Part shown: positions 27,491-64,000 of the stretch, in pieces
Position numbering within the stretch: position 1 is the stretch's first letter
How the letters are laid out: each line of letters begins with the position of its first letter
Source: Selaginella moellendorffii
Lineage: Eukaryota; Plantae; Lycopodiophyta
Length of the DNA stretch: 64,000 bases
Reading direction: 5' to 3'
NCBI RefSeq assembly: GCF_000143415.4
Contig: NW_003314333.1
Span: 1-64,000, forward strand
The notes under the pieces: generated by a model
The model's database searches: none
Seen by the model: only the letters and a program-made list of their open reading frames with translations
What the model was told of the DNA's origin: nothing
Program-made: the position numbers and the translations under genes

Positions 27491-27877
27491 AAGCTAGCCT
27501 CTCACGAGATTAGAGAGAAGGGAGAGATTAGGGAAATTCTCGATGGCATCCTTCCAAAGTAGCGCTTCCCGGATCCCCTAGCTTGGTTTGTTCATTCTAG
27601 TGAGCCAACCCATTGCAAAGAGCTTTTCCTAGCTGCCTTCAAACAGTTTCCTTAGGCACTATAGATAGGAATAGAAATAAAGTGTGTAACTTGTGAACCT
27701 TAAAGTGAAATAAAAATGACATTACAAATATGGCAATAGCTAAGCAAACATCTAAACGCAGTTTTGCAAGTGTTTGGGGAGCAATCTTGTTTGAACATTT
27801 ACCCCAAAGATGAATTGGCAAGTAAGATTACTCACCTAGACACCTAAAGTAGTAAGAAACAAATGCATATAAATGAA

Positions 27878-35199: not shown

Positions 35200-36770
35200 A
35201 GCGGCAGTGAGTATATGGCAGGACAGCTTCAGGCTTATGGCCATCTCGGACTCTCCTCAGAGAGCTGATCTTTGGCTGATCAACACGTAAGTTCAGTATC
35301 AGAAGGAAGAATCTTAAGCTGGATCAATTGTTGCTGCTGTTTTATTCGCAGGTGTACTGTGAAAGCTCCGACAATGGAAACACTGATATGTAAAGGCAAA
35401 GCAGCCTCTATTCCCTTGGTGGATAGCTGGATGCGTTCCTCAGGGTTTAAAAGATCTCGAAGCTGTCAGCGTCATCGGAGTGCAGCAAATACAGCGGGGG
35501 AGACTTTGAAACGCCACGAGGCCCGGCTGCTTCGACGGGATGCTTTACCGCTCTTGATTTGCCAAAAGTTTATAATCTCTTTTGCTGTTGTGTTTTCAGG
35601 TTCGTAAGAACAAGTTTGTCGAGATCATTCCTATCAACGTTGGCTGCTTGGGTGCTTGCACATACTGCAAGACGAAGCATGCTCGCGGGCATCTTGGCAG
35701 CTACACAGTAGACACACTAGTAAGGACCTTCGCCAGTTTCTTTTCTCTGTTACTGAGCTTTATCTACAGGTGCAAAGATTGAAAACCGTGGTGTCTGAAG
35801 GTGTGAAGGAGATATGGCGACACTGGAGCTTACGGTTATGGTTATCTGTTTCAAGCTGGCATTTTTTATTTACTTTTTTCTTTCTTTGCACTACAGGACG
35901 AGACATTGGAGCAAATATACCAGCGCTTCTACGTGCTTTAGTTGCCGCGCTTCCTCATAGACAGAAGTACAATGCTTCGAATCTACATCTTACAGCATCT
36001 GGAGGAAATGGCTGTCACCCCTGCGTGTATTTGTTCCTTCATGTTCTGGTTCAATCTGGAAGGGACTCGGTGTTGCAGGTACCGATGTTCTGGGTGATTG
36101 TTTTGTCTCTGTAAGCTGTTTTCTGTGTTCTTCAGGGCATGAAGAGGGAGTACACGTTTTCCGAGTTTAGAAAAATTGTGGATACTCTCACAAGACTAGT
36201 CCCAGAGGTTCATATCGCTACAGATATTATCTGTTGATTTCCAGGTACACTCGCATGCATGAAAAAGATTGTATCTTATTGAGCTTTTATCCTTGTCAGG
36301 AGAAACATCAGAGGATTTTGACAGGATCATGGAACTAATACGAGAGTACACGTTCCCACAGGTCCACATATCACAGTTTTACCCTCGACCAGGTAGGTAA
36401 TCTCTGTACATGCTACTGAATGGTTCGCTCTGTCACTAGTGTTTATTCTGTCAATATCCTTAGACAGGAACACCAGCGGCTCTAATGAAACGGGTTCCAA
36501 CGCTCGAAGTGAAGAAACGAAGCCGTTCCTTGACAAGTCTGTTCGAATCGTTCACTCCTTACGCAGGAATGGAGGTAAAACGTACCGAGTCTGGGTCACC
36601 AACACTGCTGCTGATGGAATTCATCTGGTATTCTTTCTTTTGTTCTACGTCTCTACAGGTTGGCCTGTGTACAAGTTCTACTTCCAGCTGTACCGGGCCT
36701 TCTTGGAAGCAAGTTAATGTGAAGATTACGTCTGTCGGAAGATGGTCTGTGACTGGTGAGTGGCGAACCA
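35200..36770 (+). pseudogene. tRNA methylthiotransferase (CDKAL1/MtaB-type radical SAM) pseudogene retaining introns
   Basis: [39 protein letters not shown] (CxxxCxxC), IATDIIC*FPGET, VKITSVGRWSV (TRAM domain); stops and frameshifts present. Confidence 0.88.
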
Positions 36771-37797
36771 GATTCCACTCCTGGAGACGATGCTGAGAAA
36801 GTCGGATGCGAGCAGCGGTAAGGAATGCGATCCTCGGGGAGTTCCTGAGAAAGAGATCCCGAGTCCAGGCATCACATTTTCGTTTGTTGAAATTCACCAG
36901 GATCAGAAGCGGCCGGCTCTGTGGTCACTCTTGTGGCTTTCTTTACACACTCCAGAAGAAAACAAGCTCAAGGACGAGTCTGTGCAACGCTCGCACAAAC
37001 TCGACTGGGCGCAACTGGGAGCTCCAACCAGAGTCCAATCTCCGCTATCCCAGACGAGGTGTCTTTACGTCAATGACGGCGAGAGACTTATCTTCATCAA
37101 GACAAGTTTGCAAGCACTGGTACGCTCTGTGTTCATCAGACTGTCTGTGGGAGAAATTCGTCGGCTCAAGTCAAGCCAACTTACCAAGGTACGTGCCTCC
37201 TGACTATACTATTTTCTGGAATTTTTGTTTTCCTTGCTTAAACGTTGAATTTTGCAGATGGCTGGTGCATAAGCACAGCACGCTATTGTCGTCTCGAAGC
37301 ACTCGCGTTTTATATTTCACGAACAGATACATGTTTCTGATTCAAGCCTTGGATGCATGGTGGGAACACGGGATTTACAGCTCCTCTAAGCTGTGTCCTC
37401 TTATATGAGAGCTTACACTGCGCGACTGGTGCGTATTCTATGAAGTGCTAAGCTCCGCTTTTGCGAATCGTGCAGATTTCCTATCTGCCTCACTTCTGCC
37501 AAAGCTTCACGGCAGATTGAATCTGTACGACCTGGAAGGTGTGTGTTTGGATGACGGAGTCACTGGGATGAAAATCTGGAAGGTGCTGCGTGACCTCTGA
37601 CAGCGTTATATCTCATGGGTGAAAGTTTGCCTTCACTGCTCGGACCTGAATTATGCAGTCTCACTCGAGAGAGTCTGGTAAGTGGCATTCCCGCTGGCTG
37701 TTGGATCCTCCACCGTTGGATCGTACAGATCTAACAGCTCAAACGCTCAGCCTTTGAGTTGCCAGAAATTTCTAAGTCCTAGCACTTGGTTTTTTGG
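35293..37797. repeat. Left arm of large inverted duplication (right arm 61524 to >64000)
   Basis: Near-identical reverse complement; identical 200-aa translations at 36806-37408 (+) and 61884-62486 (-). Confidence 0.97.
37050..37680 (+). pseudogene. F-box-like gene fragment
   Basis: RDLSSSRQVCKHWYALCSSDCLWEKF resembles the C-terminal half of an F-box motif and is followed by short introns. Confidence 0.55.
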
Positions 37798-37919
37798 TTA
37801 GACACCCCGCGGTGTTGCAATCTGGCGAGATCGCTTCTCTGGCGTCTTGTGCGGCCCAGCTCCCCTGACTCAAGTCCGGCACAGCAAATGCCCCACAAAG
37901 GGTTTTTGGCCCCCCTTGG

Positions 37920-40900
37920 CCAGACAAAGGCGAGACAGTGGGAAGCATCATCGTCAAGAGGAATCCGGGAAGAGTGCACACCAGAAGTGGTGATATCCCC
38001 GGATGGAAAGCAAGAGCCGGAGACAGGATACCCGAAGGTACTGCCGCAGTACTCAAAAATGTCTGTATGTCCGGATGCACCCATAGTCCCGTTCGGGCCA
38101 CCTCCAGTGAAGATCGAGGAGATAATGCCACCAAGGAAGCCCACGAGAATGCCACATGGACCAGCAAACGACGTATTGGAAGTAGACCCGGAAGAATTCA
38201 TGGAGGAATTAAACAAGCTGCAAGCTAGAAGAGCTGAGGAAACAATACATGTGATAGTGGAAGGAGCAGTTCCGGCAGGATTTGTCATGTCAGATTGGGT
38301 GTGTGCGGTGCTGGCGTATCACGACATGTTGGTCACGGTTTTAGCAGAAGATGTGAAGGACCTGGGGGAAAAGTGCTATAATGTGGTGATCAAGGACGAG
38401 AGAACTCGGCACAAGTTGCTGCGAGTGGATGCATACGCACAGTTGGACTTTCAGCTCTTCTTCAGAGCATACCACAACAACTTCACGCCCCAGAAAAAAA
38501 GGATGCTACTCCCGCCATCTGTGATCATGAACTTTGAGCTACATGGCATGGACGTGGCACTGGCAGAAGACAAGATTCTGGCGGCAATACTGAGGTAGTT
38601 TGCTACGTTTATAAGGATGGAAGGAATGCCAGTGGGAGATAGAGTCACGGTTAAAGTCAGGATTCCGAAAGAAGTACACATCCCCTTCGAGATAGAACTC
38701 AAGCCAGGGAAGGGGGAAGTGCCAAGAAGGATTCGGGTTATGTTGTTACCAAACCCGAGCGTGTGCATTATCTGCCGGCGCATGGGACACATTGGGAAAC
38801 ACTGTTTGGTCAGAGGAGCAAGCATGGGGGGAATGCAGGAAACAGGGGAGGACCGATAGAAAGCAAATAGTGGTTCGGAAGGCAAGAAAAGAGGAGCCAG
38901 AGGGGAAAGGGAAACAACAGAGAAAGCGGCCTCCAGCGGAGAAAGCAAGAAGCCTCGAACCAAAGGACTGAAGGAGGAGGGACAAGGGGAGCAATCAACA
39001 GCAGCCAAGCAGGAAAAAGGACAGTCGGGGGCTTCACGAGGGAAAGAATGGAGGCCGACAGGAAGACTTTTTGAAGGACAAGCCGTGGGGGAGGCAAAGG
39101 GACCTGACACAGAAGTAGAGATTGTCCAGGATAAAGGAGAACTGCCACCACAGCAGGCAACATAGAGGGTGCCGGGGCCAGTAGAAGAACAACAGTCGCG
39201 TTCAAGATCAGGAAGAACGGAAGACTTTGCAAGAGGGAACTGTCCGCCAGGATTCACTCCCCCAAGGAGAGCAGTCTGTGAAATAGAGCTCTATGTCAGT
39301 GGAACGAACCCTCCCAAGTTCCTGGGAGAATGGATCGACAACAGAGTTGGATACGCCCCACCGGCAATTTTGATATCGCCCGGACAAGACATAGGCCGGA
39401 CTCTGGAGGATATTCTGGCCTCCAACTTCAACTGGAACCCGCAGAGGTTCTCAATTCAAGAAGACAATTTCATGGAGCAAGCGCCGAACTCGTTCAGGTT
39501 CCAAGGAACGGTGAGAATCCCAATTGCATGGCCACTTCGACCAATGGGACCATACCATTGGGTGGAGAGACAGTGTCTTGGCAGTGCCCAAGGATTCAGA
39601 AATGGTTAACGTCAACGTGAGAACATGGAACGTGGGAGGCCTGAAGAAGGAGAAGTCAGCACTGAATAACAAAAAGACGAAGTTTAGACAGTACCTTAGA
39701 CAAGTAGAAGGTGTGACTCAATGTTTTGATTTCTTGTGTGTGCAAGAGCATAGGCTCTCAAGTATGGACCTGGTTTATAAGTTTACGAAAGGGAAATATT
39801 TCTGGAATCCGGCAGTATCATGTAGTGGAGGCACATTAATAGTGGTAAAAGGCCCGTGGGAATCCCTGGTCGAAGATCATCCAATACTGGTTCCGGGTAG
39901 AGTGCAGTGTGTCCAGTTTAAGATAGGAGATATGTTAGTGGGCCTCATGAATGTGTATGCACCAGCAGGAAGCTCCTCTGAAAGAGCAGATTTCTGGAAT
40001 GAATTGGTACACCAAATACCTACACAACCCTCAACATGGATGGTCACGGGAGACTTCAACTTTGTGGAAGAAGAGCTAGACAAAGATGGGGGAGAGATGA
40101 GAGACAAAAGGACAAGCAGGGAAAGAGCAATGTGGGCACAACTAGTGCTAGCAATGGGCTAGAAGATACGTACAACATCCCAGGTTTTGTACAACACCAG
40201 CCAAGATTCACATGGCAAGAGCACCAGCAACAGGGAATTCAACGAAGACTGGACCGTTTTTATGTATCACCCGAACTGTGTCAGAATAGTGGAAAATTAG
40301 ATATAACAATGGGATATAGAGACTTCTCGGATCATAACTCGGTGTCATTGATGCTTCCCATCTTAAAGAGGTGGGGAACAAAGCGGTATCTCGGAAAAAC
40401 TTCAAGGATGGGAAACTGAATGACTACATAAAAGAAAAGTGGAATCAGCAAGAAGGAGGAGATCTACACAAGTTCACAATCAAGATAGCCAATGAAATCC
40501 GGAAAAAGACACAGAACAAGCGAAGGAAAGTTTTCAAAAAAGTACAAACAATAAGAAGAAATATTGAAGCTATTAAGAGATTGATCAGGTTGGACCCGCT
40601 GGATACATCACTGAGAACTCAGCTAGCAAGAACCAAAGCCCAACTTTTCACCCTGGAAGCGGAAAAAATGGAGGCATTTATAAGGTCGGGGCACCTCAAA
40701 TGGCATATTAGTGAGAATGCACTAAACAAAGAGTTTTATAAGTCCATAAAAGCAAGAGTTACATCCCTGCCAATGTTCGGGCTCAAGGATGATAAAGGTG
40801 TGATGCACATGAGCCTACAGGAGATGCACAAGATGGCTGAGACATACTACCAAGGACTGTTTAGAGCAGAACCGTGGACAGAAGAAAGGAAAATGGCCAT

Positions 40901-43900
40901 GGAGGAAGTTCTTTAGTCGGTGCCCCAGAAAGTAGATGAATCCTTAGCACGGGCCCTGTGTAGAAACTTCACATTGGAAGAGCTAGAGGATGCAATTAGA
41001 GACTTGAACGATGACAAGATGCCCGGGGAAGATGGGATGCAGCCAGCGTACTATAAAGCAAACTGGGAATGGTTGGGGCCAGTAGTGTTGGACACATGGA
41101 AGGAGGTGATGAGAATGGGACAATGGCCCCCAAAAGCCATAGATGGAATAATTGCGCTCATCCCCAAAAAAGGAGGGGATGCATCCCTAATCAAGAACTG
41201 GAGACCGATATCGATGCTAAATACACTATACAAGATAGTAGCCAAGGTGCTAGCCAAGAGATTAAGGCCGTTATTGCCAGAGACGATACATGACACTCAG
41301 AATGGATTTGTGGAAGGAAGACAACTGGTGGACAACATCTTGACAGTGCTGCTCACACAAGAACAAGTCAAAGACCAAGGATTAGAGATGGCAATAATAC
41401 TCCTGGATTACGAGAAGGCATATGACAGAGTAGACTGGGAATTCCTGCAAATGACAATGAGGAAGATCGGCATCCCAGAAAAGTTTATAGGATGGACGGC
41501 CACCTTATACCAAGGCGCATCAAGCAAGGTCACAATAAACGGGACAGTGGGGAACACGATCAAGCTGCAACGGTCAGTAAGACAAGGGTGTCCACTAGCA
41601 CCGTTTTTATTCCTGTTCGTGGCCGATGCTTTAGCACACTATTTGGCAAGGGCGGACGGGCCGGAAGGGCTGGTATTGCCTGGGTGCAGAGACTCACTAC
41701 AAGACCTGGCAGGGACAGCGGAAAGGCAGTTGAAATCCAGTGCCTTCACAGATGACACAGGAATCATCACGTCAGGCTCCCCGGAGAACATGAGCAAGGT
41801 CAAGAAGGACTTGGACTTCTTCAACCTGGCAGCTGGCTCAAGAATAAACTGGGGAAAATCGGTGGGAATATGGCTGCCGAGCTCTGACCCACCAAATTGG
41901 GGGAGTGAGTGGGATTTTAAGTGGCTGAAACAAAGAGAAACAACAAGGTACTTGGGGTTCCAAATAGGCCAGGCATACGACCCCCTCCCACAGAATCAAA
42001 AAGCAGTCGAAAAACTCAGAGATCAACTGAAATTTTGGGCGTCACGAAAGCTGTCCTTCTCGGCAAGATGTGTAGTGGCGAATAATATAGTGCTAGGGGC
42101 AATCTGGTTCCTGGTGGCATCATGGAACTTGGACAAGAAGATGCTAAAAGAAATGAACAAGCTCATCAGGACATATGTATGGAAGAGTATCAAGAGGAGG
42201 GGCAAAGATTGGATGGAGCTCGGTCACAAGAGCAAAACAGGATGGGGGGATAAACATAATAGATATAGAGGAACAATGCAAGGCAATGCAATCCAATGCA
42301 GTTGCTATTCAAAATCTTTCACCGAATGAACATGCCCGGAAACCAGCCATGGAAACTCCTACTACGCCACCAACTGCTCAAAGTCATTCCGGACAGACTA
42401 GAACACACGAGGCAAAACTGGGAAAAAGATGAAAGGTGGCTGTTCACGGAAGGTGTGCTGAAAATGCCAAAACCAAATACATTCTCTGGGAAACTGTTCA
42501 GATTGTGGAAAGAATTCAAGAGCAAGATGGAAAAAAGAAAACCGACAAACACCTACGAGTTGGACCGACAACCAATATTTCTTAATAAGCTATTTCAATA
42601 TAAGGGGAAATATTTGGGGGAAACAGCGGACAAAGGAATAGACAAAGTATGCCGGGACCTTCACAGTTCTGGGATGAGAACATTTGCAGAAGCTGACTCG
42701 ATGATAAAAGTGGGGGAAACAAAAATGAACAGAGATAGACTAAAAGCTTTCTACAGGCTGGAAATCTCGGCACACAGGCTGAAAAAGTTCGAAACAGCCT
42801 TTGAATACGCATGAGGGAACTGCAAACAGAGCATTAGGGAAGTCAGAGAAACGACACCAGCATGGTGGATAGCCGAGGAAAAGGTGATATATACGGCAAC
42901 TCAAGACCAGGCAAAATGTTTTGTTTTCGAAGTCGGGGTGGCTGGTAGACTATTACCATACAAGGTGCCCGAGGAGAGCCTACGACCGGACATGTCAAGA
43001 GCAGAGCCAATACGAGTTATACGGATAGATAAGAAAACAGCATCAATGGACCCGACAATAACAGAAGGCCAAGTAGCTAGGATGTACTGGTTCAGGCAAC
43101 AAAAATTAAGCGAGCTGGCCTGGGACCCGACAGAATGGAATTGGCAGGGAAGGAAAAAGGAAGAATTTTTTGCTTACGAACCAAGACTGGGGAGAAGGCT
43201 CATTTGGCCATGCAGTGACTCACTACTGGTATCAAGGATGAAACGAGCCAACATACAGGACAAGTCACAACAGGCGATATTGAAAGAACTATGGAAAGGA
43301 CAGTGGGCAGCAAAAACAAGATACTTCATGTGGTTGACAATGCAAGACTGGCTACCATCTAAACGGAACATACACCTCTTGGAGCAAACTTGAGATAAAT
43401 GTGGAGCGAGGGAGACACAAAGGCACATACTATGGGAATGTGAAAGCGCACAAGACGTGTGGAGAAGCATGTGCTGGATGCTACAACAACACTCCAAAAG
43501 ACAAGTGTGCCTCACATATGAAGCGGCAGTGTGGGGCGAAGCTGCCGCAGGAATGCGAAATGGAACAGACTCTTGGAAATGGGCAGCAATAGAAGAAGGG
43601 GCACCATGGTTTGATCAGCTCAACACAACTCGAACAGACATAGAAGGAATTCCAACAGAGATAGTGGACCTATTATGAGGAATTACAATGTGGGAAGTAT
43701 GGAAAGCCCAGTGCAACAGAATCTTTAATGACAGGGAAGAAGGACCAAGGGTGGTGGCGTCATGGGTGTGGACTAGAATGATAACTGCAGCAGCAGCCCG
43801 TGTCCTACAACTGGAAAATAGAGGAGGGAGAAATGGTCCAGAAAAAGCAAAAAAAGAAGCATAGATCTGGCATTTTTTATGGAAGCAAGGGGAGGCAGGT

Positions 43901-44110
43901 ACTCGGGAATGGAGGTGGACACCACCGGACGAATGGTTAGAGGTGACGCATCTCAAAAGACCTTCGGGCGCCAGTTCATGAGCAACCCCCCTTTCTGTAG
44001 GTACTTCCATTGTAGGCTCCTCTAGATAAAGGCTCTTTGCTGGTTTTGTGCCCAATGAAACCATGCCCAGTTTTTTTGGTTTTTTTCTGGAAAATAAAAG
44101 GCCCCGTTTA
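37920..44110 (+). mobile_element. L1-clade LINE (family A), essentially full length, inactivated by stops and frameshifts
   Basis: ORF1 with CIICRRMGHIGKHC. ORF2 from ~39602 with TWNVGG/QEH/NVYAP/GDFN/RLDRFY/SDH (APE), NWRPIS/LDYEKAYD/QGCPL/FTDD (RT), and CGARETQRHILWEC (zf-RVT). Confidence 0.92.
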
Positions 44111-44125
44111 ACCAAGTCGGACCAG

Positions 44126-44341
44126 ATGTTTTTTAGAGGAAGAAGCGAGGCTGGAGAAGAAGAATGGATGTGGAAACCACCAATATGGATTTGGCAGCAC
44201 ATGTTCAGGAACGACGGCACGTGTACCTCCCCAAGTCGACAGAGTTCAACACCAGGAACATTGGAAGCTGGAGGATTGGAGGTCACGGACTTGAGTACCA
44301 GTTCTACTTTGTTCCCCTCGTCACACCCCCCCTAAAAAAAA
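44126..44341 (+). mobile_element. 5'-truncated 3' end of LINE family B, directly upstream of a full copy
   Basis: 44126-44259 matches 51785-51917, then continues to a C-run and short A tract (44334-44341). Confidence 0.8.
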
Positions 44342-45075
44342 TCTTGAAGAGCTCTTTCCGGGTTTCGAGCATGTCGAAATCAGACTCTATGGTTTATAGA
44401 GGATAAATTAATTAAAACCCCATTGACAAAGTCAGACCAAACTGCAGAAAGTGTCATGGCAAGGGGCACACAGGTATGGACTTCAATCAGTAGTTCCACC
44501 TCCAAATCATTTTTCACCTGGTCGAGAGCATCCCTCCCCAAGAATCCATGCTCCGCCCAATCGAAAATTTCTTCCCGCTCAGACAAAGCCCATGCGAGAA
44601 ATGGCTAAGTCCCAAGCACGGTCAGGATCGTCCGAAAAAAGATCCAACGGCCTGGAGCAGACAGCGACAAACACCAAAAAATCACACACAAGGATGACAA
44701 TACACGCACCGAGCCGATCAGCGTCACAACTATTGGATCGCGAGAGGCAAGCTCCAACCGAAGGATCTGCTGCCTCTCCCACGCACAAGTCCCAGCCACG
44801 GCTAAGATCAACTGTGGCAAGATCGCACGGTCCAGAATGGGTGGGAAAGATGACGAAGGAAAAGAAAAATGACGTCACCATCCCCCACGTGTCACCAGGG
44901 AACACTCCCCCATGTCGCCATCACCCCGACAATCATCAAGAGGGCAGTTAAGTGTACAGACTGCCTCGAACCAACACAATGTACGGCGGGAGAATCGCCA
45001 AGATCGCGATACATCATCAAAATCCAAGGCGAACTTAAGAGGGAGCACGTCCATTTAAAGGGGTCAAAATAAATG

Positions 45076-45106
<31 letters not shown>

Positions 45107-51100: not shown

Positions 51101-51917
51101 CAGTACGAGACCAAGCTGGGCCGAAAACTGATCAAGGTGCCGACTCGATCCTCCCTCATCCGGAAAGCAAAGGCCCAACAGATCCACTCCAGGAACCACT
51201 CACACTGCATCGACAAGATCTGGAAGGGGCACTGGTCAGCTAAGAACCGCTACTTCATGTGGCTGGCCCAACAAGAATGCCTTCCCTCTCTAGCGGCCAT
51301 ACATCTTCCGAACACAGCCTGCAAGACCTATGGTGCCACAGAAACACAGCAACACATCTTATGGGAATGTCCAGCAGCATAGGAAGTATGGGAAGGTGCA
51401 GCAGCGGTACTCAAACGAACGTCATCCGGAGGCACTACAATCACATATGAATGAGTGCTCTGGGTAGCTTCATCCAGGGAAAAACAAAGAATCCTGATGC
51501 TTGGAAGTGGAGACACAACGAGGCCCCACACTTTGATCAACTCAACCAAACTCGGACACACATTAAGCATCTCCACCAGGAGCTCTTCGATGTGCTTTGG
51601 GGATGCACACTAGCAGAGATATGGAAGGCTCGCTGCGCCAGGCTGTTCGAGGACACGGACCCCTTGGCTTGAGCAACTATCTCAAAGGTTTGGTCCAGAA
51701 TGATCGTCTCACTCGCGGCCCGCCTGGACACACTGATCAAACGAGACGAGGAAGGGAAAATAGCGAAGGAGAAGGACCTGTGGCTGTTTTTTAGAGGAAG
51801 AAGGGAGGCTGGAGAAGAAGAATGGACATGGAAGCCACCAATATGGATCTGGCAGCACACGTTCAGGAACGACGGCACATGTACCTCCCCGAGTCGACAG
51901 AGTTCCACACCAGGAAC
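44342..51917 (+). mobile_element. L1-clade LINE (family B), near full length, 3' end replaced by telomeric repeats
   Basis: ORF1 pieces 45426-47204, APE from ~47538 (SWNVGG, QEQ, GDFN, RLDRFY, SDH), RT 48698-49810 (FADD), C-terminal region and zinc finger to ~51900. Confidence 0.92.
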
Positions 51918-51920
51918 TTC

Positions 51921-51973
51921 GGTTTTAGGGTTTAGGGTTTAGGGTTTAAACCCTAAACCCTAAACCCTAAACC
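51921..51973. repeat. Head-to-head interstitial telomeric array (TTTAGGG)3TTT|AAA(CCCTAAA)3
   Basis: Perfect palindrome 51924-51971 centred at 51947/51948. Confidence 0.97.
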
Positions 51974-53122
51974 TCTGGGCTTGTTCGTCAGGTCCGACAA
52001 GCACCTATGGGCAAACGTTAGTGTCCGGAGAGGCAGCTCCTTGTTCAGCCCTAGGACCACAGCTGAACGGTCTGACTCCTTGGAGATCTCCTGGCTTGGT
52101 TGTGTCTCTAAATGAGGGATTGTGAACTCACCTTCTAGTGAGGCTTCCATGTTGAGCCTGCAGGACAGAAGTGCATCCCCACTGGTGTTCTGTTCCCCTC
52201 TGTTTTTGGACATTCTGGGTGGGGCAAACTTGAGTTCTCCTGACCCATGTCCTGGCTTTGCTGCTGCTGCACGTGCTACTACTCTGGTGGTGACCCCTAA
52301 CCTGACCCTGGTGTGCCGCTCTTGGACTTCTGTGAGACAGCCAAACCTGTGGATCCCCTTGACGGTGAAAGTACTCGGGATGATTCCCCGCAAGCCTTCC
52401 TGACTTGTAACTGGCCCAAGACCCTCACGAAGCTCTTGAACTCTAGCCAGTGACCAAGCAAGTGGGTGAGGGGAAGTAGCTTTGTCCTCTCCACCACTCT
52501 CGGCGGGCACCTCATCTCTGGCGTGGCTTTTACTTCCAGCTTTTTCTAGGACCTGGCCATCCCCCAGCCCTGAAACATCCACCACTTCTATCCCATGGTT
52601 CTCATCCTCTGCTGGGTTGCTGCCTTGCGTGGCTCGCTTGCTGCCTTGCACACTAGTGTTCTGGCTGTTGATACAGAGGGCCCTTTCCTGTCCTGGCTTG
52701 CTGCTGTGTGTGTGCCAGAACCCCAACCTTGCAACAGTCCTTGTGGGAGTCGAATACTGAGGTCCCTACCTCGCCCTCCACGACTTTGAGAGCTCAGTTT
52801 GGTGGGCGTGGATGCTGTGATTCCCCTGTGGCTGTTCTCCATGCTGCTAACAGGAGAGTGAGTACACAGTAGAAACAAGAAAAGGGGAACAATGCTTCCC
52901 TGAATCTCACGGCAGAAGCCCCCGCCGACAGTAGCAAGTGTGGGGAGATTGCACGCTCTCCCCTGAGCGCTCTTCTACCTCAGGCTGCACCTCCGATCAT
53001 GGCAGCCATGGTGCTGGGTGCCTTCCACCACTTCCCCTCCAAAAAACGTCCAACATTAGGGTCCGCGCCACTGCGAAAAATCAATCTGGCGAGATCGCTG
53101 AACGTGTATGTACATTCCCCAT
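51974..53122 (-). mobile_element. Inverted 5' segment of LINE family C
   Basis: Reverse complement is homologous to 2455-3128 + 3719-4189. Confidence 0.88.
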
Positions 53123-53189
53123 GCGCACGGAGAATGAGGATTGCACAAAGTGGTGCCGCGATCTTGCCGGATTGTCGGGTACGAACGTC

Positions 53190-55404
53190 AATCCAGAAGT
53201 GGGGTCCCCGGAAACTCGGCTTGCCAGCGAGAGTGGTAGTCGCTAGGAGCATCATTCTGCCCGGCATCTGGTACCACCTCTCCATCTGGCCTGTTCCAGA
53301 ACGCACTCTTAGAAAGGTACGCACGATGGTCCGTCAGTATTTGTGGCGGGGCGCTCTGGTCACAGGGAGGAGCATGGCCAAGGTCGCGTGGCAATCTACA
53401 GCACGTCCGCGAGTCTTGGGAGGACTTGGAGTAATCGATCCAAGCGACATGGCGAAGGCGCTACGGTACAAAATCCTCCTCATGGGCCTTCAACCAGGTA
53501 ATCAACCTTGGAGACTCATGTTTAGGCAGAACTTGTTGGCAATCCGGCCCAAGCACAACACTGCAAGACCGTGGGAAGAAGATCCACGTTGGCTCTTTGC
53601 CGAGGGGCCGAAACAAGTAGTCAAGGGCGGCACTCTAGTCCAGGGGTTTCTTCGGTTATGGAGCACGTTTCCAGTCAGCAGGGAATTGCCAGGGCGAGCG
53701 GAGGACTGGCTGAACCAGCCCCTGTTCTTCAACGACCTCTTCAAACTGGATGACAGGACGCTGGGCAGGGAGGACCACTACACAATCTGGAGAAAGCTAC
53801 ATAGCGCAGGCTTCCGAACTCTCAAGCAGCTGGTGCGGGTTCTGGACAAGGACAGGAGGAAGACTACGAGGCATATGCAGGTCTTTAACCCGGGACGGTG
53901 GAGGAAAGTCCACCTTGATCTTCTTCGCATTATCAGAGCTGTGAGTGAGGCGAAGCAGGGGCAGCTCTGGCCTAGGCGTTGTCTCAAATCTGGAGACTTT
54001 GTGGCTCTGCAACGGGACGTGGAGCCAGACAGGGAACGAGTTAGCTTGGGGGCCTGGACACGGGCGTTTACGGCCCCAACACCAGCTTGGGAGGACAGGG
54101 ATGTGGAGGTATGGTTCGTTGTGTCTCCAGACCAAAATGTTGGGCGTCCTTTTCGAGTCTTGAGAGGCGACATGCTGTTGCCAGCAGGGGACGAACAGGT
54201 CATGCCGATGGTGACGGATGACGAGGTCAAGGGTAGGATTCGAGTAATACGACAGGCTCCGAAGCAGTCGGTGGTGGTTCAATCATTGGCAGCACTAGAG
54301 GGGGAAGGCATTCTTAGATGGTGGCGACAGCAGCTCATCGAGGATCTGGATTGGGACCCCGCAGCATGGAAACGAGGAGCGAGAAGCTTCTTCTCCTTCA
54401 GCGTCAAGGAAGCAAGGGATGGTCTCTTGACCGGCAGGGAGGAGGCCCGAGGGGAGATCCCCAAGCTCTGGAAGAAATGGATCGAGCAAGGAGTTGAAGC
54501 TAATCAGGTGGTGGGCAACACGCTTGCGTTCTGGAAACTACCGGTACAGGAGAAAGTCAAGGCCACCTCTTGGTTGGTGGCAAATAACGGGCTGCCGGTA
54601 GGACAGCGGTTCCAGGAAGAAGCATGCCGACGGTGCAAGGAGTGTGGCGAGCTGGAGACAACGCGACATGTCCTATGGGAATGTGACATGGCAAGAGAAG
54701 TTTGGCGACAGATCTTCAAGGCAACGCAGGAACTCGGCGACATTCCAGAGTTTGAGGCTCGGAGTGGGGATATCCTCCACTGGTTTGAGGGAGCTAGAGG
54801 CCCAGCCATTGGTCCAGCTTGGAGGCGTATTCGCTGCTACGGACGGCACCAATGGAACATGCGAGTCCGGTGGGACGTGACAGGGGCTGAAGTTGGGATG
54901 TCCATCTGGGAGGCGTTGGGCCATGAGCGCTGGTCCATTTGGAGGGCAACAAGACTGCAGGCACTTTGGGAGGCACGGAACCACTGTCGCTTTGATGGGC
55001 AGCAAGCGAGAATATCGGCAGTGGTGGTATCATGGTGGAGACTCACTCTTGCAGCGGTGCATCTTCACTACACCATCCTGAAAGAGCAGGCGAAACCGAG
55101 GCAGCTCGAGGAGTGGAGATCTAGGTGGCTCCCATGCTTCGGCAAATTGGGAGGTGGCGAGATTCGCTGGCAGTGGCGCCCCCCAGACTCTGTTCTAAGA
55201 TCAGCTCATGGGGGAGACTTGGACATCGACATGATTCGCTCGAGACGACCACGTCCACTTCTACTCCAGGACTAGGTCTAGCTGCGGCATATGAGGATCA
55301 CGTAGAGTAGCTCATTGAGAGGGCGGCATGCCAATTTTTTGTATTAGTCCCATTGGGACATGGGGAATGTACATACACGTTCAGCGATCTTGCCGGATTG
55401 TGGG
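53190..55404 (+). mobile_element. 3' part of LINE family C ORF2 (post-RT region and zf-RVT, open to TAG at 55273) plus 3' UTR
   Basis: KLGLPARVVVARSIILPGIWY, KVAW...GGLGVID, CKECGELETTRHVLWEC, LWEARN motifs; ~695 uninterrupted codons. Confidence 0.88.
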
Positions 55405-55408
55405 TCAG

Positions 55409-56978
55409 GAGCGCTGGTCCATTTGGAGGGCAACAGGATGGGAGGCTCAGAACCACTGTCGCTTTGATGGGCAACAAGCGAGAATATTGGCAGTGGTGGC
55501 ATCATGTGTAAGGAACCAACTCGCCGAGGTGTCATAGGCTAAAGGAACCCCGAAAGCATGACCAAAATGACAAAGAGTTCATCGGATGGGACCAAGTCGA
55601 AGATCGAGTCCAAGATCGACTCGGAGATCGAGTTCGAGATAGAGTCCGAAATCGAGTCCGAGGCCGACTCGGGGACCGAGTTTGAGACCGAGTTCGAGAC
55701 CAAGTTCGAGACGGAGTCCGAGATCCGAAATCGGGTCCGAGACCGAGTCCGAAGTCGAGTCCGAGGTCGGGTCCGAGATCGGGTCTGAGATCGAGTCCGA
55801 GATCGAGTCCGAGACCGAATCCGAAGTCGGATTCAAAATCGAGTCCGAGATCGAGCCAGAGACTAAGTCCAAATACTAATATGGGTCGAGGGGTGAAAGC
55901 CCAAAGCATGCGTCTCCCAGGGGGGGGGGGCTGCAGGGGGTTCCAAAAGTATAGTAGGGATAGTGAGGTCCAGGAACCAGTTTTGAAGGGACTCTCCAGT
56001 GGGGCTCCCAAACTGACTTGAGGTTGAGATTGGGACTGAGGGGCCTTGGGTGGGAGTGAGCATGGACTTGGCTGGTGCCAGAGGGGCCATCCAAGGAAGT
56101 GCTCAAGAGCAGCTCCCACTCCCGAATGGGAAACTAATTGCAGTGCTCCCGGCTCATGCGGAATGGTGCCCCACTTGAGTACCATGTGGCTCATTGGTCC
56201 TCGCCCTTCCTAGGGGCTTGGGCCTTCCTTCGGGATGGAAGTGGGGGGGTAGAGGTACCCATACCGGGCCACTAGGCCACGGTGTTTCGCCCCAGTGTCC
56301 CGAAGCAAGTGTTGCACTCAAGACTTGGGATTTAGAGGGTCCCATGATCAAGTCTTGTGGTACTAAGGGATGTTAGGAACCTGGAAGCTTGGTGTGCTTG
56401 GCTGCTTGTGCTTGCGGGGAGTGTAGCCGAACCTTAAGTCCAGTCTAACCCGGGGAGGGGGATTGCGAGTGATTTGGGAATCCATGGAAGGATGGCTAAC
56501 ACTCCGTTGCTCGTGTAGTGAGTAGCTGAAACCAAGTAGTAGCTGGTACCATAGGCGAGAACTTTGGCAAGGGAACTTAGCAAAAGCCAAGGTAGTGTTG
56601 GACGGATAGACGAGGTAAATTAGCAAATTGGAAGGGAAAAATTTGTGGCTTACATCATGGTGGAGACTCACTCTTGCAGTGGTGTGTCTTCACTACACCA
56701 TCCTGAAAGAGCGTGCAAAACCGAGGCAGCTCAAGGAGTGGAGATCTAGGTAGCTCCCATGCTTCGGCAAATTGGGAGGTGGCGAGATTCGCTGGCAGAG
56801 GCGCCCCCCGGACTCTGTTCTAAGGTCAGCTCGTGGGGGAGACTTGGACATCGACATGATTCACTCGAGACAACCACGTCCACTCCAGGACTAGGTCCAG
56901 CTGCGACATATGAGGATCACGTAGAGTAGCTCATTGAGAGGGCGGCACGCCCAATTTTTGTATTAGTCCCATTGGGAC
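55409..56978 (+). mobile_element. Second tandem 5'-truncated copy of the LINE C 3' end, interrupted by a solo LTR
   Basis: 55409-55506 + 56655-56978 duplicate 54925-55359. Confidence 0.88.
55507..56654 (+). mobile_element. Solo LTR (1148 bp, family Y)
   Basis: TGTAAG...CTTACA ends and perfect TSD TCATG (55502-55506, 56655-56659). Confidence 0.9.
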
Positions 56979-57064
56979 CATTGTCGAGACAGCATGATCG
57001 AGAGCAAGTAGAGGAGGCAAGGGAATGAATTTTCATTCATTCGTGAGCAAGGGAGAGGACAAGA

Positions 57065-57120
57065 GACAACCCGAGACCGGTTTCATCCTTTTTGGGACTC
57101 ATCAGCCAGATGTAGTTGTC
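57065..57120 (-). ncRNA. Minimal type I hammerhead ribozyme
   Basis: Minus strand: GACAAC-tacat-CTGG CTGATGA GTCC caaaaa GGAT GAAA CCGG TC^ TCGG-GTTGTC. It has the conserved core, stem II, a palindromic ACCGGT stem III and a bulged stem I. Confidence 0.85.
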
Positions 57121-57454
57121 TAGCATCTACCCTAACCCTAGCTCGGCATCGACTCTACTTATATTCTAGCTCTCTTACTTGGCACAAATCCATGTGGCAG
57201 CCATGCAAGGTGGTGTGGCAGCGTTGGCTCGCGAAGGTGCGAACGTAGAAAAGCTGGAGTGCATTACTCAGCAGCAGTGGTAGTCGCGGAGAATGACTTC
57301 AATGGATTGCCGAAGACAGTAAGCGTTTGTCTAGCAAGTGATGTACCTTTGACGCAAGATAACTTGTAAATGCGGCATTATATGATGCATGCATTACATC
57401 CACAATGCTTGTGTCATTTGTATGTACCCAGAGACGAAAAACAAGGTTCACTTT

Positions 57455-57945
57455 GCAGGGAATATTCTGAGAATATTCTAACGTTGACCGTTGATCCCTA
57501 AACCCTAAACTCGGTCAACAAAAAGACTGTCAAGGAATATTCGGGAATATTCCATTCTGACCGTTGACTTCGCGTTGACCGTGCGTTGACTCGAATGGGA
57601 GGTGGCCTGGAGTGACTGGTACGTACCCGAGGTCCCTAATCAGTCATGCAGAGACGCCCTTTGCCCGCAACATGTTGGCATGTGTGTCGTCGATGTCGCA
57701 TGGCACCATTATAAGATTCGCAAGCTTTCCAAGGTGTGGTGTTCATCGTTAGGAGATGAGACCAACGTAGTCACCCTTGGAAAGAGGTGCAGAATCAAAT
57801 GGTGTAGGCCTTGTTGACTCGGTCAACCATCTGACTGTTGGGGAATATTCAGGAATATTCTGGTTTTGACAGTAGACTGAGCGTTGACCGGGCGTTGACC
57901 GGTGGGGGACGACCTGAGGTGACTGGGACATACCTAGAGTCCGTC
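57455..57945. repeat. Degenerate ~310-bp repeat rich in GTTGAC and GGAATATTC motifs, with (CCCTAAA)2 at ~57496
   Basis: 57510-57635 is similar to 57818-57942. Confidence 0.65.
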
Positions 57946-58170
57946 AGCCAGACCCTGAAGGTCATCAGTTACGTGGAGGAGGATGCAAATGTATCCTTCC
58001 GTCTCTTGTAAAGCGCAGTAGAAGACATGGCTAAGCTCGCAAAGCGAGTTTAGCCCTGACCAGGAACAAACCGGGGTTCGGGAGGCATCTCCAGCATGTG
58101 ATCACTCAGGGGAGTGCATCTGCGAGAGCTTCATCCATCACCTATTTAGGGTTTAGGATGCCCCCCAAGC

Positions 58171-58700
58171 CTAGCTGCATGCTGTGAAGCATGTAGGGCA
58201 GCTTAAAGGCGAGGGTGGCCCGTTGACAAACGCTGCTAGTGCAGTGCAAACGTGCGAGGAGAGCTTGATGTCACTGGTTGTGGGAAATGCCGGAGAAGCA
58301 GTTTGGAGGAAGGAGATCGAGTATCCCCAGGCACGGAAGCAGTGGTAGAACCACGTGCGCATGGCATGGAATCCATTGGCCGTGCTCTTGCAGAGGAGGT
58401 ATCTCCGGAGCTCACTGTGGATGAATGCCACTTTCTGGTGCCATGGGTGAACCAATGTCCAGGGGAGGTACTGGCAGGCGTTGAGGGGCTTCTGGAACGT
58501 GGACGAGTCAAGGCAGCCTGTCTCTTCAAGGCAAGGGCCTTTGAAGAATTGGATATCGAGGAAATCCAACTCCTCGAGCGAGATCACCAGGATGATCTTG
58601 ATCGAGGGACATAGCGTGCCGTATCCTTGGAGCCATCGCTTGAGGCCTGCTCGTGTACCTGTCCAAGTGCTCACTCCGTCATCTATGTACCTCTGTGGAA
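58171..58700 (-). mobile_element. Penelope-like element reverse transcriptase fragment (palm end and thumb)
   Basis: RYIDD...LDFLDI...STFQKP..QYLPW..HPWHQKVAFIHSELRRY is the characteristic PLE RT C-terminal signature. No GIY-YIG motif is visible. Confidence 0.85.
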
Positions 58701-58974
58701 GGGTGATTTGTTGGTTGTGTTGAGGCACTCGTCGAGTCTGTGGGGACAGTGTTGAGTGTGGCATTGTGGACACTGGCTGCTGCTGTCAGTGGGACATGTG
58801 GGCCTGAATCGGACAGACCGCAGAGCAGAGCCAAGTGCAAAGGTGATGGTGGCTGCTGCGCTGGGCCAGGTCCTGGAGAGCATTAAGGCGAGAGGGCTCG
58901 CTGCTCTGTTCCAGTGGCAGGGGCTGGCCTGGGTGGCGATTGCATAGGATTTCTCCCTCCTCCATAGCCACAAG

Positions 58975-61050
58975 AAACAAAAAATCTAAGTGCTGGGACT
59001 TAGAATTTTTTGCACTCAGTGTTTGAGCGTTGTGGGCCACTAGATCAAGAGGATCTGATGGTGGAGGATAAGCAGGAGAGAAATGTGAACGGTTTTTGTT
59101 CTCCTATGGCAGATTAAGTGGATTCTTGGTAGTGTTGTGGCGATGTCTAGGCAGCTTGGGTGCTCTGAGTGGCAGGGAGCGTTCCCATTGGCATCTTTGG
59201 TGAACCTTTGGTGGTGCCAAGGCAACACACCAAAAGGGGGGGCAAAGAGCCTTTGTGAGGGATTTGCTGTGCCAGACCCAAGTCAGGTGAGCTGGGCTGC
59301 ACTAGATGCCAAAAAGACTGCTAAGTGGAGAGTTCAAGCTAGCTCCCAAACTCTTAGTGGCCGTGAGTAGCTCCAGGTGGGGATTTTTTGTGGCACTTTG
59401 GTGGTAGAATGCAGCGTGCAGAGGCCAATGCAAATGCCTGGCCTGGAGACATGCTGTGCCAAACCCATGTGAGGGGAGTGAGAGGCATCGTGGCTCGTTT
59501 CTCTGGATCCAGAGCCATGCTTGGAGTTGTCTTGGCTTGCCATTGGCTTGTCACTGGGGCATGGTCAAGACAGAAATGTCCTGCCGTGACTGCTCCTGCA
59601 AATGTGTCTCCCACAGCAGATTTTGGTGGATCACAGCAACTTTGTGGTGATGTCTGGGTGGCACAAGTACTCTCAACGACAGGGAGCAATCCCCTTAGCA
59701 TTTTTGGAGATCCCTTGGTGGTGCCGAGGCAGCAACCAAGGGGGGCCAAAAAGCCTTTGTGGGGCATTTGCTATGCCGGACCTGAGTCAGAGGAGCTGGG
59801 CCGCACTAGACGCCAGAAAAGCTATTGGGCATTTATGTAGGCCCCTGTGCACTGCACCTCACCGCCAGGATGCCACAGAAAGCCCTGCCTGGAGCCACTA
59901 AGAGTCTCGGAGCTAGCTCGGAAGAGAGAGGAGAGGGAAGCGTGAGTGGGCCTTTGCAATGGCTGTTGCTGTTGCAAAGGCTTCTCCCATGGCAGATTTT
60001 GGTGAGGCACAGCATTTCTATGGTGATCTCTGGGCGGTGTGGGTGCTCTATGTGGCAGGGAGCAGCTCCCTTGGCATTTTTGATGATCTCTTGGTGGTGG
60101 CAAGGCACTGGACCAAAAGGGGGCAAAAAGCCTTTGTGGGGAGTTTGCTGTGCCAGACACAATTCAGGGGAGCTGGGCTGCAGGAAACACCAAAGAGATT
60201 ACTGTGTCGAGAAGCCAAACTAATTCCCGGACTCTTAGTGGCAATGAGCATCTCCAGGCAGGGATTTTTTGTGGCACTGTGGCAGCAAGGTGCGGCACAC
60301 AGGGGCCAACGCAAATGCCTGGCTTGGAGACTTGCTGTGCCAGACCCTGGCGAGGGGAGAGAGGGGCAGCATGGCTGGTTTCTCTGAATCCAGAACCATG
60401 CTTGGAGTTGTCCTGGCTTGCCGTTGGCTTGATGTTGTGGCGTGGTCAAAACAGAATGCCCTGTCGTGACTGCTCCTTGCATCTTTCTCCTCCATAGCCT
60501 AAGTACGATTCAGGCTTGGACCACATGGACCGTTGGATCGGGAGATCTGACGGTGGAGAGGATGCTGGAGAAGCAGAGGCGGGCATTTGCAATTGCGGTT
60601 GCAATTGTGTCTCCCACGGCAGATTCTGGCAGATCACAGCAGCTTTGTGGTGATGTCTTGGTGGTGCGGGTGCTCTCAACAGCAGGGAGCAATCCCCTTA
60701 GCATTTTTGGAGATCCCTTGGTGGGGGGCCAAGGGGGGCCAAAAAGCCTTTGTGGGGCATTTGCTGTGCCGGACTTGAGTCAGGGGAGCTGGGCCGCACT
60801 AGACGCCACAAAAGCTGTTGTGTGGAGAGGCCGAGCTAGCTCCCAGACTCTTAGTGGCGGTTAGCAACTCCAGGCAGGGATTTCTGTGGCGTCCTGGCGG
60901 TGAGGTGCAGCGCGCACAGGGACCTACGGAAATGCCCGGCCTGGGGACTTGCTGTGCCAGACCCGTGTGCAGGGAGTAAGGGGCATCATGGCTGGCTTCT
61001 CCTGTCCCAGAGTCATGTATGGAGTTGTCTTGGTTTGCTGTTGGCACCAG
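58975..61050. repeat. Four degenerate ~400-600 bp tandem units (satellite or non-autonomous element)
   Basis: Motif cctttgtg.gg..tttgct.tgcc recurs at ~59250, 59754, 60131 and 60747. A reverse-complement fragment is at 37836-37920. Confidence 0.8.
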
Positions 61051-61523
61051 GCGGTGCGGGGAGGCGCTAGGCAGGGCGCAGCGGCTCTGGGTGGCATGTG
61101 GCGGCCCTGAAAGGCGTGCGGCGGTGCTTGGCGCTGCTGGGCACCGCGTAGCGTCGTGCGGTGGTGCCTGGCGCAGCGGGGCACTGCTGGGCAGCGCTGG
61201 TGGTGCTGCTGGGCAGCGGCTGGCCGGGACGCAGTGCTAACGGGCTGGGCCACGACGAGCCACAGGGCTGGCGCTTTGGGCGGCGAGTGCTGGCCCAAGT
61301 GCTCGCTGTGGCGGTCGCTGGAGGCCGGCCGTGGCACGGCTGGCTGGCCGGCTGGAGCAGCAGCCGCAGCAGCTGCTGGTGTTGGCAGGCCGCGGGCTGT
61401 TGCAGTGGCTGGCGCTGCCTGCGTCGGCTGCTGCTGCTGCTGCTGGAGCAGCTGGCTGTGGTGACCTGGGCCGTGGCGTGCTCAAGGCGTAGCTGGCATG
61501 CTCACGTAGCTTCCTCTCCATTG

Positions 61524-64000
61524 CCAAAAACCAAGTGCTAGGACTTAGAAACTCAAAGGCTGAGCGTTTGAGCTGTTAGATCTGTACGATCCAACGGTGG
61601 AGGATCCAACAGCCAGGACTCTCTCGAGTCGGACTACATAATTCAGGTCCGAGCAGTGAAGGCAAACTTTCACCCATGAGATATAACGCTGTCAGAGGTC
61701 ACGCAGCACCTTCCAGATTTTCATCCCAGTGACTCCGTCATCCAAACACACACCTTCCAGGTCGTACAGATTCAATCTGCCGTGAAGCTTTGGCAGAAGT
61801 GAGGCAGATAGGAAATCTGCACGATTCGCAAAAGCGGAGCTTAGCACTTCATAGAATACGCACCAGTCGCGCAGTGTAAGCTCTCATATAAGAGGACACA
61901 GCTTAGAGGAGCTGTAAATCCCGTGTTCCCACCATGCATCCAAGGCTTGAATCAGAAACATGTATCTGTTCGTGAAATATAAAACGCGAGTGCTTCGAGA
62001 CGACAATAGCGTGCTGTGCTTATGCACCAGCCATCTGCAAAATTCAACGTTTAAGCAAGGAAAACAAAAATTCCAGAAAATAGTATAGTCAGGAGGCACG
62101 TACCTTGGTAAGTTGGCTTGACTTGAGCCGACGAATTTCTCCCACAGACAGTCTGATGAACACAGAGCGTACCAGTGCTTGCAAACTTGTCTTGATGAAG
62201 ATAAGTCTCTCGCCGTCATTGACGTAAAGACACCTCGTCTGGGATAGCGGAGATTGGACTCTGGTTGGAGCTCCCAGTTGCGCCCAGTCGAGTTTGTGCG
62301 AGCGTTGCACAGACTCGTCCTTGAGCTTGTTTTCTTCTGGAGTGTGTAAAGAAAGCCACAAGAGTGACCACAGAGCCGGCCGCTTCTGATCCTGGTGAAT
62401 TTCAACAAACGAAAATGTGATGCCTGGACTCGGGATCTCTTTCTCAGGAACTCCCCGAGGATCGCATTCCTTACCGCTGCTCGCATCCGACTTTCTCAGC
62501 ATCGTCTCCAGGAGTGGAATCTGGTTCACCACTTCCAGCTGTACCGGGCCTTCTTGGAAGCAAGTTAATGTGAAGATTACGTCTGTCGGAAGATGGTCTG
62601 TGACTGGCGAGTAGAACTTGTACACAGGCCAACCTGCAGAGACGTAGAACAAAAGAAAGAATACCAGATGAATTCCATCAGCAGCAGTGTTGGTGACCCG
62701 GACTCGGTACGTTTTACCTCCATTCCTGCGTAAGGAGTGAACGATTCGAACAGACTTGTCAAGGAACGGCTCCGTTTCTTCACTTCGAGCGTTGGAACCC
62801 GTTTCATTAGAGCCGCCGGTGTTCCTGTCTAAGGATATTGACAGGATAAACACTAGTGACAGAGAGAACCATTCAGTAGCATGTACAGAGATTACCTCCC
62901 TGGTCGAGGGTAAAACTGTGATATGTGGACCTGTGGGAACGTGTACTCTCGTATTAGTTCCATGATCCTGTCAAAATCCTCTGATGTTTCTCCTGACAAG
63001 GATAAAAGCTCAATAAGATACAATCTTTTTCATGCATGCGAGTGTACCTGGAAATCCACAGATAATATCTGTAGCGATATGAATCTCCGGGACTAGTCTT
63101 GTGAGAGTATCCACAATTTTTCTAAACTCGGAAAACGTGTACTCCCTCTTCATGCCCTGAAGAACACAGAAAACAGCTTACAGAGACAAAACAATCACCC
63201 AGAACATCGGTACCTCCAACACCGAGTCCCTTCCAGATTGAACCAGAACATGAAGGAACGAATACACGCAGGGGTGACAGCCATTTCCTCCAGATGCTGT
63301 AAGATGTAGATTCGGAGCATTGTACTTCTGTCTATGAGGAAGCGCGGCAACTAAAGCACGTAGAAGCGCTGGTATATTTGCTCCAATGTCTCGTCCTGTA
63401 GTGCAAAGAAAGAAAAAAGTAAATAAAAAATGCCAGCTTGAAACAGATAACCATAACCGTAAGCTCCAGTGTCGCCATATCTCCTTCACACCTTCAGACA
63501 CCACGGTTTTCAATCTTTGCACCTGTAGATAAAGCTCAGTAACAGAGAAAAGAAACTGGCGAAGGTCCTTACTAGTGCGTCTACTGTGTAGCTGCCAAGA
63601 TACCCGCAAGCATGCTTCGTCTTGCAGTATGTGCAAGCACCCAAGCAGCCAACGTTGATAGCCATGATCTTGACAAACTTGTTCCTACGAACCTGAAAAC
63701 ACAACAGCAAAAGAGATTATAAACTTTTGGCAAATCAAGAGACGGTAAAGCATCCCGTCGACCCAGCCAGGCCTCGTGGCCTTTCAAAGTCTCCCCTGCT
63801 GTATTTGCTGCACTCCGATGACGCTGACGGCTTCGAGATCTTTTAAACCCTGAGGAACGCATCCAGCTATCCACCAAGGGAATAGAGGCCGCTTTGCCTT
63901 TATGTATCAGTGTTTCCATTGTTGGAGCTTTCACAGTACACCTGTGAATAAAACAGCAGCAACAATTGATCCAGCTTAAGATTCTTCCTTCTGATACTGA
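61524..64000 (-). pseudogene. Right arm of inverted duplication: CDKAL1/MtaB-type pseudogene (~62520-64000) and F-box-like fragment
   Basis: Reverse complement of 35293-37797; [16 protein letters not shown] at 63510-63710. Confidence 0.92.

Follow-up and report, generated by a model that had tools for sequence, protein, structure and literature searches.

What event left two near-identical copies of a dead gene facing each other across roughly 24 kb of mobile-element debris, with a perfect telomeric palindrome between them? The question is raised by the first 64,000 nucleotides of contig NW_003314333.1 of the lycophyte Selaginella moellendorffii (RefSeq assembly GCF_000143415.4, forward strand; hereafter the window), in which a CDKAL1-type pseudogene and an F-box fragment occur as two inverted arms, separated by a spacer of 23.7 kb. 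The answer we favour, with evenly balanced confidence, is a real inverted segmental duplication of young age, in which a block adjoining a multicopy gene was copied; conversion between the arms followed, as did remodelling of the spacer through long interspersed nuclear elements (LINEs) and at least one break-and-join event. Such a local duplication is preferred because it is the simplest reading that fits everything seen. Structures of this kind, in which an inverted segmental duplication is accompanied by a short telomeric scar of the fusion type, are already known.

Inverted arms and their lesions

Self-BLAST of the window aligned positions 35293-37760 with 64000-61550, in inverted orientation, over 2,476 bp at 96.4% identity, and a global alignment carried the homology on to 37797 and 61524. 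The repeat search, self-BLAST and global alignment were concordant on these inverted arms, bearing out a first-pass annotation that had proposed them from the sequence alone, and chance is excluded as the source of their similarity. The left limit of 35293 is simply where the mirror image runs off the window rather than a biological boundary, with identity there still at 96%. Long inverted arms around a unique spacer are a feature of gene-conversion palindromes, and this arrangement was recovered by both the repeat search and self-BLAST. The arms, the differences between them, and the satellite piece that adjoins the left arm are as follows.

35293-37797, plus strand: left arm, visible part, with exons of a CDKAL1-type pseudogene (about 35300-36760) followed by a fragment of an F-box pseudogene (about 36800-37650); from the repeat search, self-BLAST, global alignment and profile matches
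61524-64000, minus strand: right arm, running as the reverse complement of the left and truncated by the window end
37833-37921, minus strand: single satellite piece on the left side, mirroring 60727-60815 and interrupted at 37921/37922 by the start of LINE 1
35293-35720: block with 4.2% divergence between the arms
35721-36200: block with 0.6% divergence
36201-36682: block with 2.1% divergence
36759-37675: block with 0.44% divergence, including 891 identical bases
37694-37758: block with 0% divergence
36765-37655: 891-bp stretch identical in both arms, a putative recent gene-conversion tract (global alignment)
36235-36237: TGA in the left arm only, where the right arm has GGA, in 'DIICGFPG'
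35550/35551: 1-bp indel, the left arm being shorter
37676-37693: 18-bp indel, in the left arm only, of no known polarity
37759-37768: 10-bp indel, in the left arm only, of no known polarity
36683-36758 and 62534-62609: 76-bp segment in opposite orientations in the two arms, of no known polarity (self-BLAST)

Four exon-sized pieces of the arms found their best NCBIfam match in TIGR01578 (MiaB-like-B, of the CDKAL1/e-MtaB type; E values from 4e-14 to 1e-4). Although searched singly against the profiles, rather than as a joined gene model, these pieces matched colinearly, at profile positions 127-170, 193-259, 261-296 and 295-327, and the radical-SAM CxxxCxxC motif can be read among them as 'CLGACTYC'. 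An open reading frame (ORF) of 200 amino acids at 36806-37408 gave an F-box-like match (5.7e-8) confined to profile positions 12-44 of 47, making it a partial F-box. These matches agree with the content first assigned to the arms, a CDKAL1-type pseudogene and an F-box fragment. Further CDKAL1 5' exons may lie left of 35293, where they were read by eye ('SEYMAGQL', 'ADLWLINT'); these putative pieces had no Pfam or NCBIfam match, being too short.

The CDKAL1-type gene in the arms is a pseudogene. Its reading frame is broken by several frameshifts common to both arms, as well as by the TGA that is private to the left arm. From 35551 to 36682 there are zero indels between the arms, meaning that every frameshift in this interval is common to both, and the arm translations agree save for a few substitutions, for example in the disrupted '...VKEIWRHWSLRLWLSV...' stretch. 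Frameshifts present in both arms indicate that the gene was dead before being copied, and the few arm-private lesions indicate changes that arose after the duplication. Hence the earlier statement that the arms share their lesions is correct for all frameshifts in 35551-36682, but needs amending for the few lesions found in one arm only. A further difference between the arms is the 76-bp segment, which matches its counterpart in direct, not inverted, orientation (82 bp, 98.8%), and is bordered by the imperfect inverted 8-9-mers ACTTCCAG and CTGGTGAGT. A TRAM-domain exon was sought at this micro-inversion without a profile or structure match, leaving the ancestral arm of the segment unproven.

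The same segment forms the divide between a more diverged outer part of the arms and a nearly identical inner part. Arm divergence, a measurement proposed in the first-pass annotation, is patchy, varying between 0 and 4.2%: the outer part contains 31 differences in 1,390 bp, versus four in 982 bp of the inner part (Fisher p = 1.8e-4). Had the arms decayed independently after a single duplication, their divergence would be uniform, whereas a mosaic is the product of gene conversion between inverted repeats. Therefore the patchwork of 0-4% divergence, combined with the 891 identical bases, suggests arm-to-arm gene conversion, although the mosaic is one seen between two arms only. For comparison, the long terminal repeats (LTRs) of a Ty3/gypsy element at 18011-23478 are 98.1% identical.

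The mirror symmetry extends inward to the satellite, as had been noticed at the outset, with 37833-37921 being the reverse complement of 60727-60815 at 96% identity. The arm lies 35 bp from this satellite piece on the left, versus 708 bp on the right, where the rest of the unit and a GC-rich low-complexity stretch intervene, and beyond LINE 1 the left satellite piece does not resume. As the mirror homology runs into the satellite, the duplicated block took in the satellite start, and the original centre of symmetry is somewhere in the present spacer.

The spacer and its telomeric palindrome

The 23.7 kb between the arms comprises the following features.

37922-44340, plus strand: LINE 1, degenerate, with a gag-like zinc knuckle, AP-endonuclease (39524-40162), reverse transcriptase (RT; 40920-42329), a weak zf-RVT match and a 3'-end A8 run
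45426-51917, plus strand: LINE 2, degenerate, with endonuclease (47208-47870), RT (48698-49810) and zf-RVT (49841-51382)
51924-51971, no strand: perfect head-to-head telomeric palindrome, (TTTAGGG)3.4 then (CCCTAAA)3.4, of 24+24 nt, with its centre at 51947/51948
51974-53123, minus strand: element E, the first approximately 1.15 kb of a LINE, truncated precisely at the telomeric repeats, with a fuller copy at 2455-7267 (plus strand)
53124-56978, plus strand: two 5'-truncated LINE copies, head-to-tail, with zf-RVT in the ORF at 52999-55275
58976-61045, plus strand: satellite array of approximately 3.5 units of about 520-600 bp (approximately 2 kb)
61046-61523, no strand: GC-rich low-complexity stretch that separates the satellite from the right arm, with no left counterpart (35 bp there)

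The palindrome, which the first-pass annotation had placed within the spacer, consists of two tracts arranged head-to-head, as is characteristic of fusion-type interstitial telomeric sequences. TTTAGGG is the telomere repeat of S. moellendorffii, the telomeres of which are 1.5-5.5 kb in length, and interstitial telomeric bands are known in this species (PMC3400083). To the left of the palindrome, the homology of LINE 2 to the 3' region of LINE 1 ends at ...CACCAGGAAC (51917), 5-6 nt short of the telomeric repeats, and is followed by TTCGG and then the repeats themselves; beyond the corresponding point, LINE 1 continues for approximately 80 bp of unrelated sequence up to its A8 run. To the right, the fuller copy of element E runs on past ...AAGCCCAGAG, exactly where the repeats begin. 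On both sides, the G-strand repeats come after a free 3' end. That two different LINEs are cut at the repeats, or within 6 nt of them, marks the junction as a break-and-join scar, and suggests that telomerase extended both broken ends before they were joined.

LINE 2 and element E belong to different families, with approximately 32% protein identity in one comparable stretch, and neither the repeat search nor self-BLAST found inverted homology between 37922-51923 and 51974-60726. A fusion between sister chromatids was consequently rejected, as nothing is mirrored beside the palindrome, and a simple sister-chromatid form of the breakage-fusion-bridge product offered by the first-pass annotation is excluded on the same grounds. 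Nor is the symmetry of fold-back or breakage-fusion-bridge events, with little or no spacer, seen at this locus, where the spacer is long and unmirrored. Priming from a telomeric overhang places C-strand repeats after the 3' end of an element; by reasoning from this known mechanism, telomere-primed LINE addition was rejected for both flanking LINEs, as their sense strands end in G-strand repeats.

Telomeric 14-mers were observed nine times in the window, compared with 0.04 expected by chance. Two 14-nt telomere-like tracts, at 57496 and 58145, fall within repeats and could be telo-box-like motifs of the ordinary sort. The C-strand repeat also occurs in four copies outside the spacer, at 10047-10074 (minus strand), in otherwise unique sequence.

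The remainder of the spacer is repetitive. Its ORFs encode AP-endonuclease, RT and zf-RVT domains from three or more LINEs, every one of which lies on the plus strand and is split into several ORFs, and a domain search of the spacer ORFs returned nothing besides LINE domains. The two 5'-truncated copies have the same terminal sequence of approximately 330 bp (55029-55359 and 56654-56978, 92%). The satellite array contains a small internal inverted piece (59827-59921), and a 'header' of approximately 90 bp, which precedes two of its long blocks, also forms the inner end of both arms. Hence the original description of the spacer is upheld for the LINEs, the satellite, and the telomeric tracts, these being the 48-nt palindrome and the two of 14 nt, but the 'solo LTR' it listed is unconfirmed. 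A run of 27 C nucleotides (45080-45106) lies just upstream of the first ORF of LINE 2.

Element E also occurs within a composite found twice in the window (2176-4192 and 55369-51970), in which reverse-complemented LINE terminal sequence is followed by the start of the element. The two composites are approximately 80% identical, and the left copy lacks 2 kb (53124-55119) found in the spacer copy; the pair stems either from an old duplication of this segment or from a structured family of elements. The fuller copy of element E contains two insertions of a dispersed repeat of approximately 190 bp, possibly a miniature inverted-repeat transposable element or a short interspersed nuclear element. 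At least five copies of this repeat, in both orientations and 82-88% identical, are present at 3126-3322, 3522-3716, 11040-11239, 14918-15107 and 15308-15501.

Origin of the inverted pair

Under the favoured local duplication, the dead CDKAL1-type gene, the F-box fragment and the adjoining satellite start would have been copied in inverted orientation, and the copy very probably also took in a neighbouring Crinkler-type NTPase gene that lies outside the visible arm. The arms would then have exchanged sequence by gene conversion, generating the patchwork of divergence, with one of them acquiring the 76-bp micro-inversion in the order we infer, while the DNA between the copies would have filled with LINE copies. 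Telomerase would have added a few repeats to both broken 3' ends prior to ligation, such that two truncated LINEs became joined via 24+24 nt. This junction may be a local repair scar; alternatively, it may be one breakpoint of the rearrangement, whether by inversion or end-joining, that set the copies in inverted orientation. Such an inversion may have flipped one copy of a tandem pair.

Several points weigh against this history. Because the right arm runs out at the end of the window, the size of the duplication, and any mirroring of the NTPase gene, are beyond view. The public assembly holds both haplotypes, amounting to 212.6 Mb for a genome of approximately 106 Mb (PMC7801247). Consensus mixing of near-identical repeats in a Sanger assembly could partly cause the patchy divergence. 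Furthermore, no target-site duplications were found for the spacer LINEs, which, together with the failure of the left satellite piece to resume, means that the spacer is no clean stack of insertions in a small centre.

An end-to-end fusion of chromosome ends would give the palindrome a larger meaning. In this scenario, the ends of paralogous subtelomeres or of homologues were each broken in a LINE, capped by telomerase and fused head-to-head, with the arms being a shared subtelomeric block; their present internal position would result from the fusion itself, or from a later breakage-fusion-bridge cycle. Head-to-head telomeric blocks are a recognised signature of fusion sites (PMC6410037), and here a perfect example separates two truncated LINEs, with the arms facing each other across the junction at distances of 14.1 kb and 9.6 kb, and repeat-only DNA between arm and junction on both sides. 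Yet known fusion sites have long degenerate arrays, whereas these tracts are 24 nt each, perfect and nearly equal, such that local break repair with telomerase filler fits them at least as well as a fusion of eroded telomeres. The distant arms are candidates for the mirrored subtelomeric families that flank fusion sites; the immediate flanks are unrelated LINEs, and the lack of mirror homology at the junction excludes the sister-chromatid version. There is also no positive support for a subtelomeric origin of the arm, whose neighbour is an intact gene from a multicopy family that is dispersed, and a stable product would need both the loss of one centromere, or a further break, to resolve a dicentric chromosome, and two telomeres that had each shrunk to 24 nt. 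Fusion is therefore an unlikely origin.

The arms could instead be separate copies of a mobile or dispersed unit, such as Helitron or Pack-MULE-like cargo or a dispersed segmental duplication, that lie in opposite orientations by happenstance, with no palindrome-forming event. Captured-gene cargo does show the arrangement seen here, two unrelated gene fragments abutting on a single strand, and the family of the adjoining NTPase gene has at least 14 models, more than 92% identical, across at least eight scaffolds. However, the mirror homology passes through the gene fragments into a local satellite that is present only here within the window; no transposon termini were recognised at the inner arm ends; and the 891 identical bases point to exchange between these two particular copies. 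A word search of annotated proteins of 110-350 amino acids, which is weak evidence, likewise found no relative of the 200-amino-acid F-box ORF. Such a unit is accordingly a rather improbable source of the pair. Still harder to sustain is an assembly artefact, in which two haplotypes of one locus were mis-joined in opposite orientations, despite the two-haplotype content of the Sanger assembly, and an outer-arm divergence of 2-4% that is of the order expected between haplotypes. The 64-kb window contains zero Ns, and a false join would require a non-palindromic connection of 23.7 kb, the sole palindromic point being 48 nt of telomeric repeat. An overlap assembler is unable to join at that point, because G-strand and C-strand reads share no sequence, and the real telomeres of the species are measured in kilobases, not in 24 nt. 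The inner 891 bp are moreover identical whereas the outer part differs, and both large scaffolds with members of the NTPase family have a closely spaced gene pair, as judged by accession numbers only. We hold an artefact to be very unlikely.

The local duplication with a telomeric scar shares parts of its structure with several known systems. It is similar to fusion-type interstitial telomeric sequences, such as the ancestral fusion site at human 2q13, in that G-strand repeats are followed head-to-head by C-strand repeats, at an internal position that is repeat-rich on both sides. However, the S. moellendorffii tracts are 24+24 nt, perfect, and abut truncated LINEs rather than recognised subtelomeric families, and this site is known from the sequence of the window. 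The few exact repeats at an interrupted junction, and their size, fit the short interstitial repeats that telomerase inserts during double-strand-break repair (Nergadze et al., as cited in PMC6410037), although the cases outlined in that citation are unidirectional insertions, whereas here both ends seem to have been extended, in what would be an unusual two-sided variant. As in the ampliconic palindromes of sex chromosomes, inverted arms surround a unique spacer, and fully identical stretches lie beside diverged ones; unlike those palindromes, which exceed 99.9% identity and carry intact genes, the identity is 96-100% in patches, and the visible arms carry pseudogenes. Fold-back or breakage-fusion-bridge inverted duplications similarly have a rearrangement junction between inverted copies, but they are symmetric, with an absent or short spacer, in contrast to the asymmetric 23.7 kb that is unmirrored at the junction here.

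The significance of the locus depends on which of these origins applies. If it is a local duplication only, it adds to the examples of a fast-duplicating, immune-like gene family being reshuffled with its dead neighbours in a small plant genome, and its value is mainly as a caveat for annotation, there being two pseudogene copies rather than genes. More useful is the telomeric palindrome, a clean and datable junction suggesting that telomerase acted at both broken ends before they were joined. Combined with a chromosome-scale assembly, it would enable a direct test of end-to-end chromosome fusion in Selaginella. Interest is modest, but would be higher were the palindrome the fusion point of chromosome ends. 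It is a long shot that this locus represents, in a plant and down to the base pair, an equivalent of the human 2q13 fusion site, and may thereby record a change in Selaginella chromosome number.

The NTPase gene and its duplication-prone surroundings

The gene next to the left arm was identified from one large exon.

32986-34959, minus strand: large first exon of the Crinkler-type NTPase gene LOC9639810 / SELMODRAFT_446505, an intact ORF of 657 codons

The whole gene spans 32119-34959 of the window (minus strand), with its start codon 334 bp outside the visible left arm. Its ORF differs from XP_024515870.1 (LOC9639810), encoded on the 981,669-bp scaffold that holds this locus, at one of 648 aligned residues. 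By our reading, the exon lies head-to-head with the pseudogene 5' exons, which no profile confirmed, and which reach to within approximately 100-200 bp of its start codon. The distinct S. moellendorffii gene models of this family have 92.6-99.6% protein identity, which indicates very recent amplification; the scaffold of the window gene has three members, and a 1.13-Mb scaffold, possibly the other haplotype, has three as well. The window copy has several substitutions, including those at residues 242, 421, 636, 659 and 709, that are unseen in five close paralogues.

The identifiers of the window gene (SELMODRAFT_446505 / D8SS13) are nearly adjacent to those of a paralogue, SELMODRAFT_446508 / D8SS18, which we would guess to be a second copy few genes away, and which could be the mirrored one. 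Calibration of accession order as a guide to position, using a MOT1-like ORF, failed, since the MOT1 copies of the window are unannotated. In an identity tree, all NTPase paralogues were about equally distant from the window gene (94-98%), such that neither an allele nor a mirror partner was assignable among them.

The region is prone to duplication, independently of any telomere story. Self-BLAST of the window also recovered an older direct duplication (7253-8867 and 26100-27662, 91-94% identical) and an older inverted duplication (16440-17938 and 31511-30123, 77-80%). Directly repeated fragments of a MOT1-type molybdate transporter, 91-94% identical, are found at 7181-8867 and 25500-27662 (minus strand). 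Neither is annotated as a protein, and the best-matching MOT1 of S. moellendorffii, located on another scaffold, has only 72% identity; hence these fragments are probably pseudogene copies. The older inverted pair is rich in 12/23-bp tandem repeats (TGGAGTCCGAGA-like), similar to others at 55601-55855 within the LINE stack. Finally, the Ty3/gypsy element is a chromovirus (plus strand) with gag, protease, RT, integrase and chromodomain ORFs and LTRs of 270 bp, and sits between copies of an older repeat family that are 72-82% identical.

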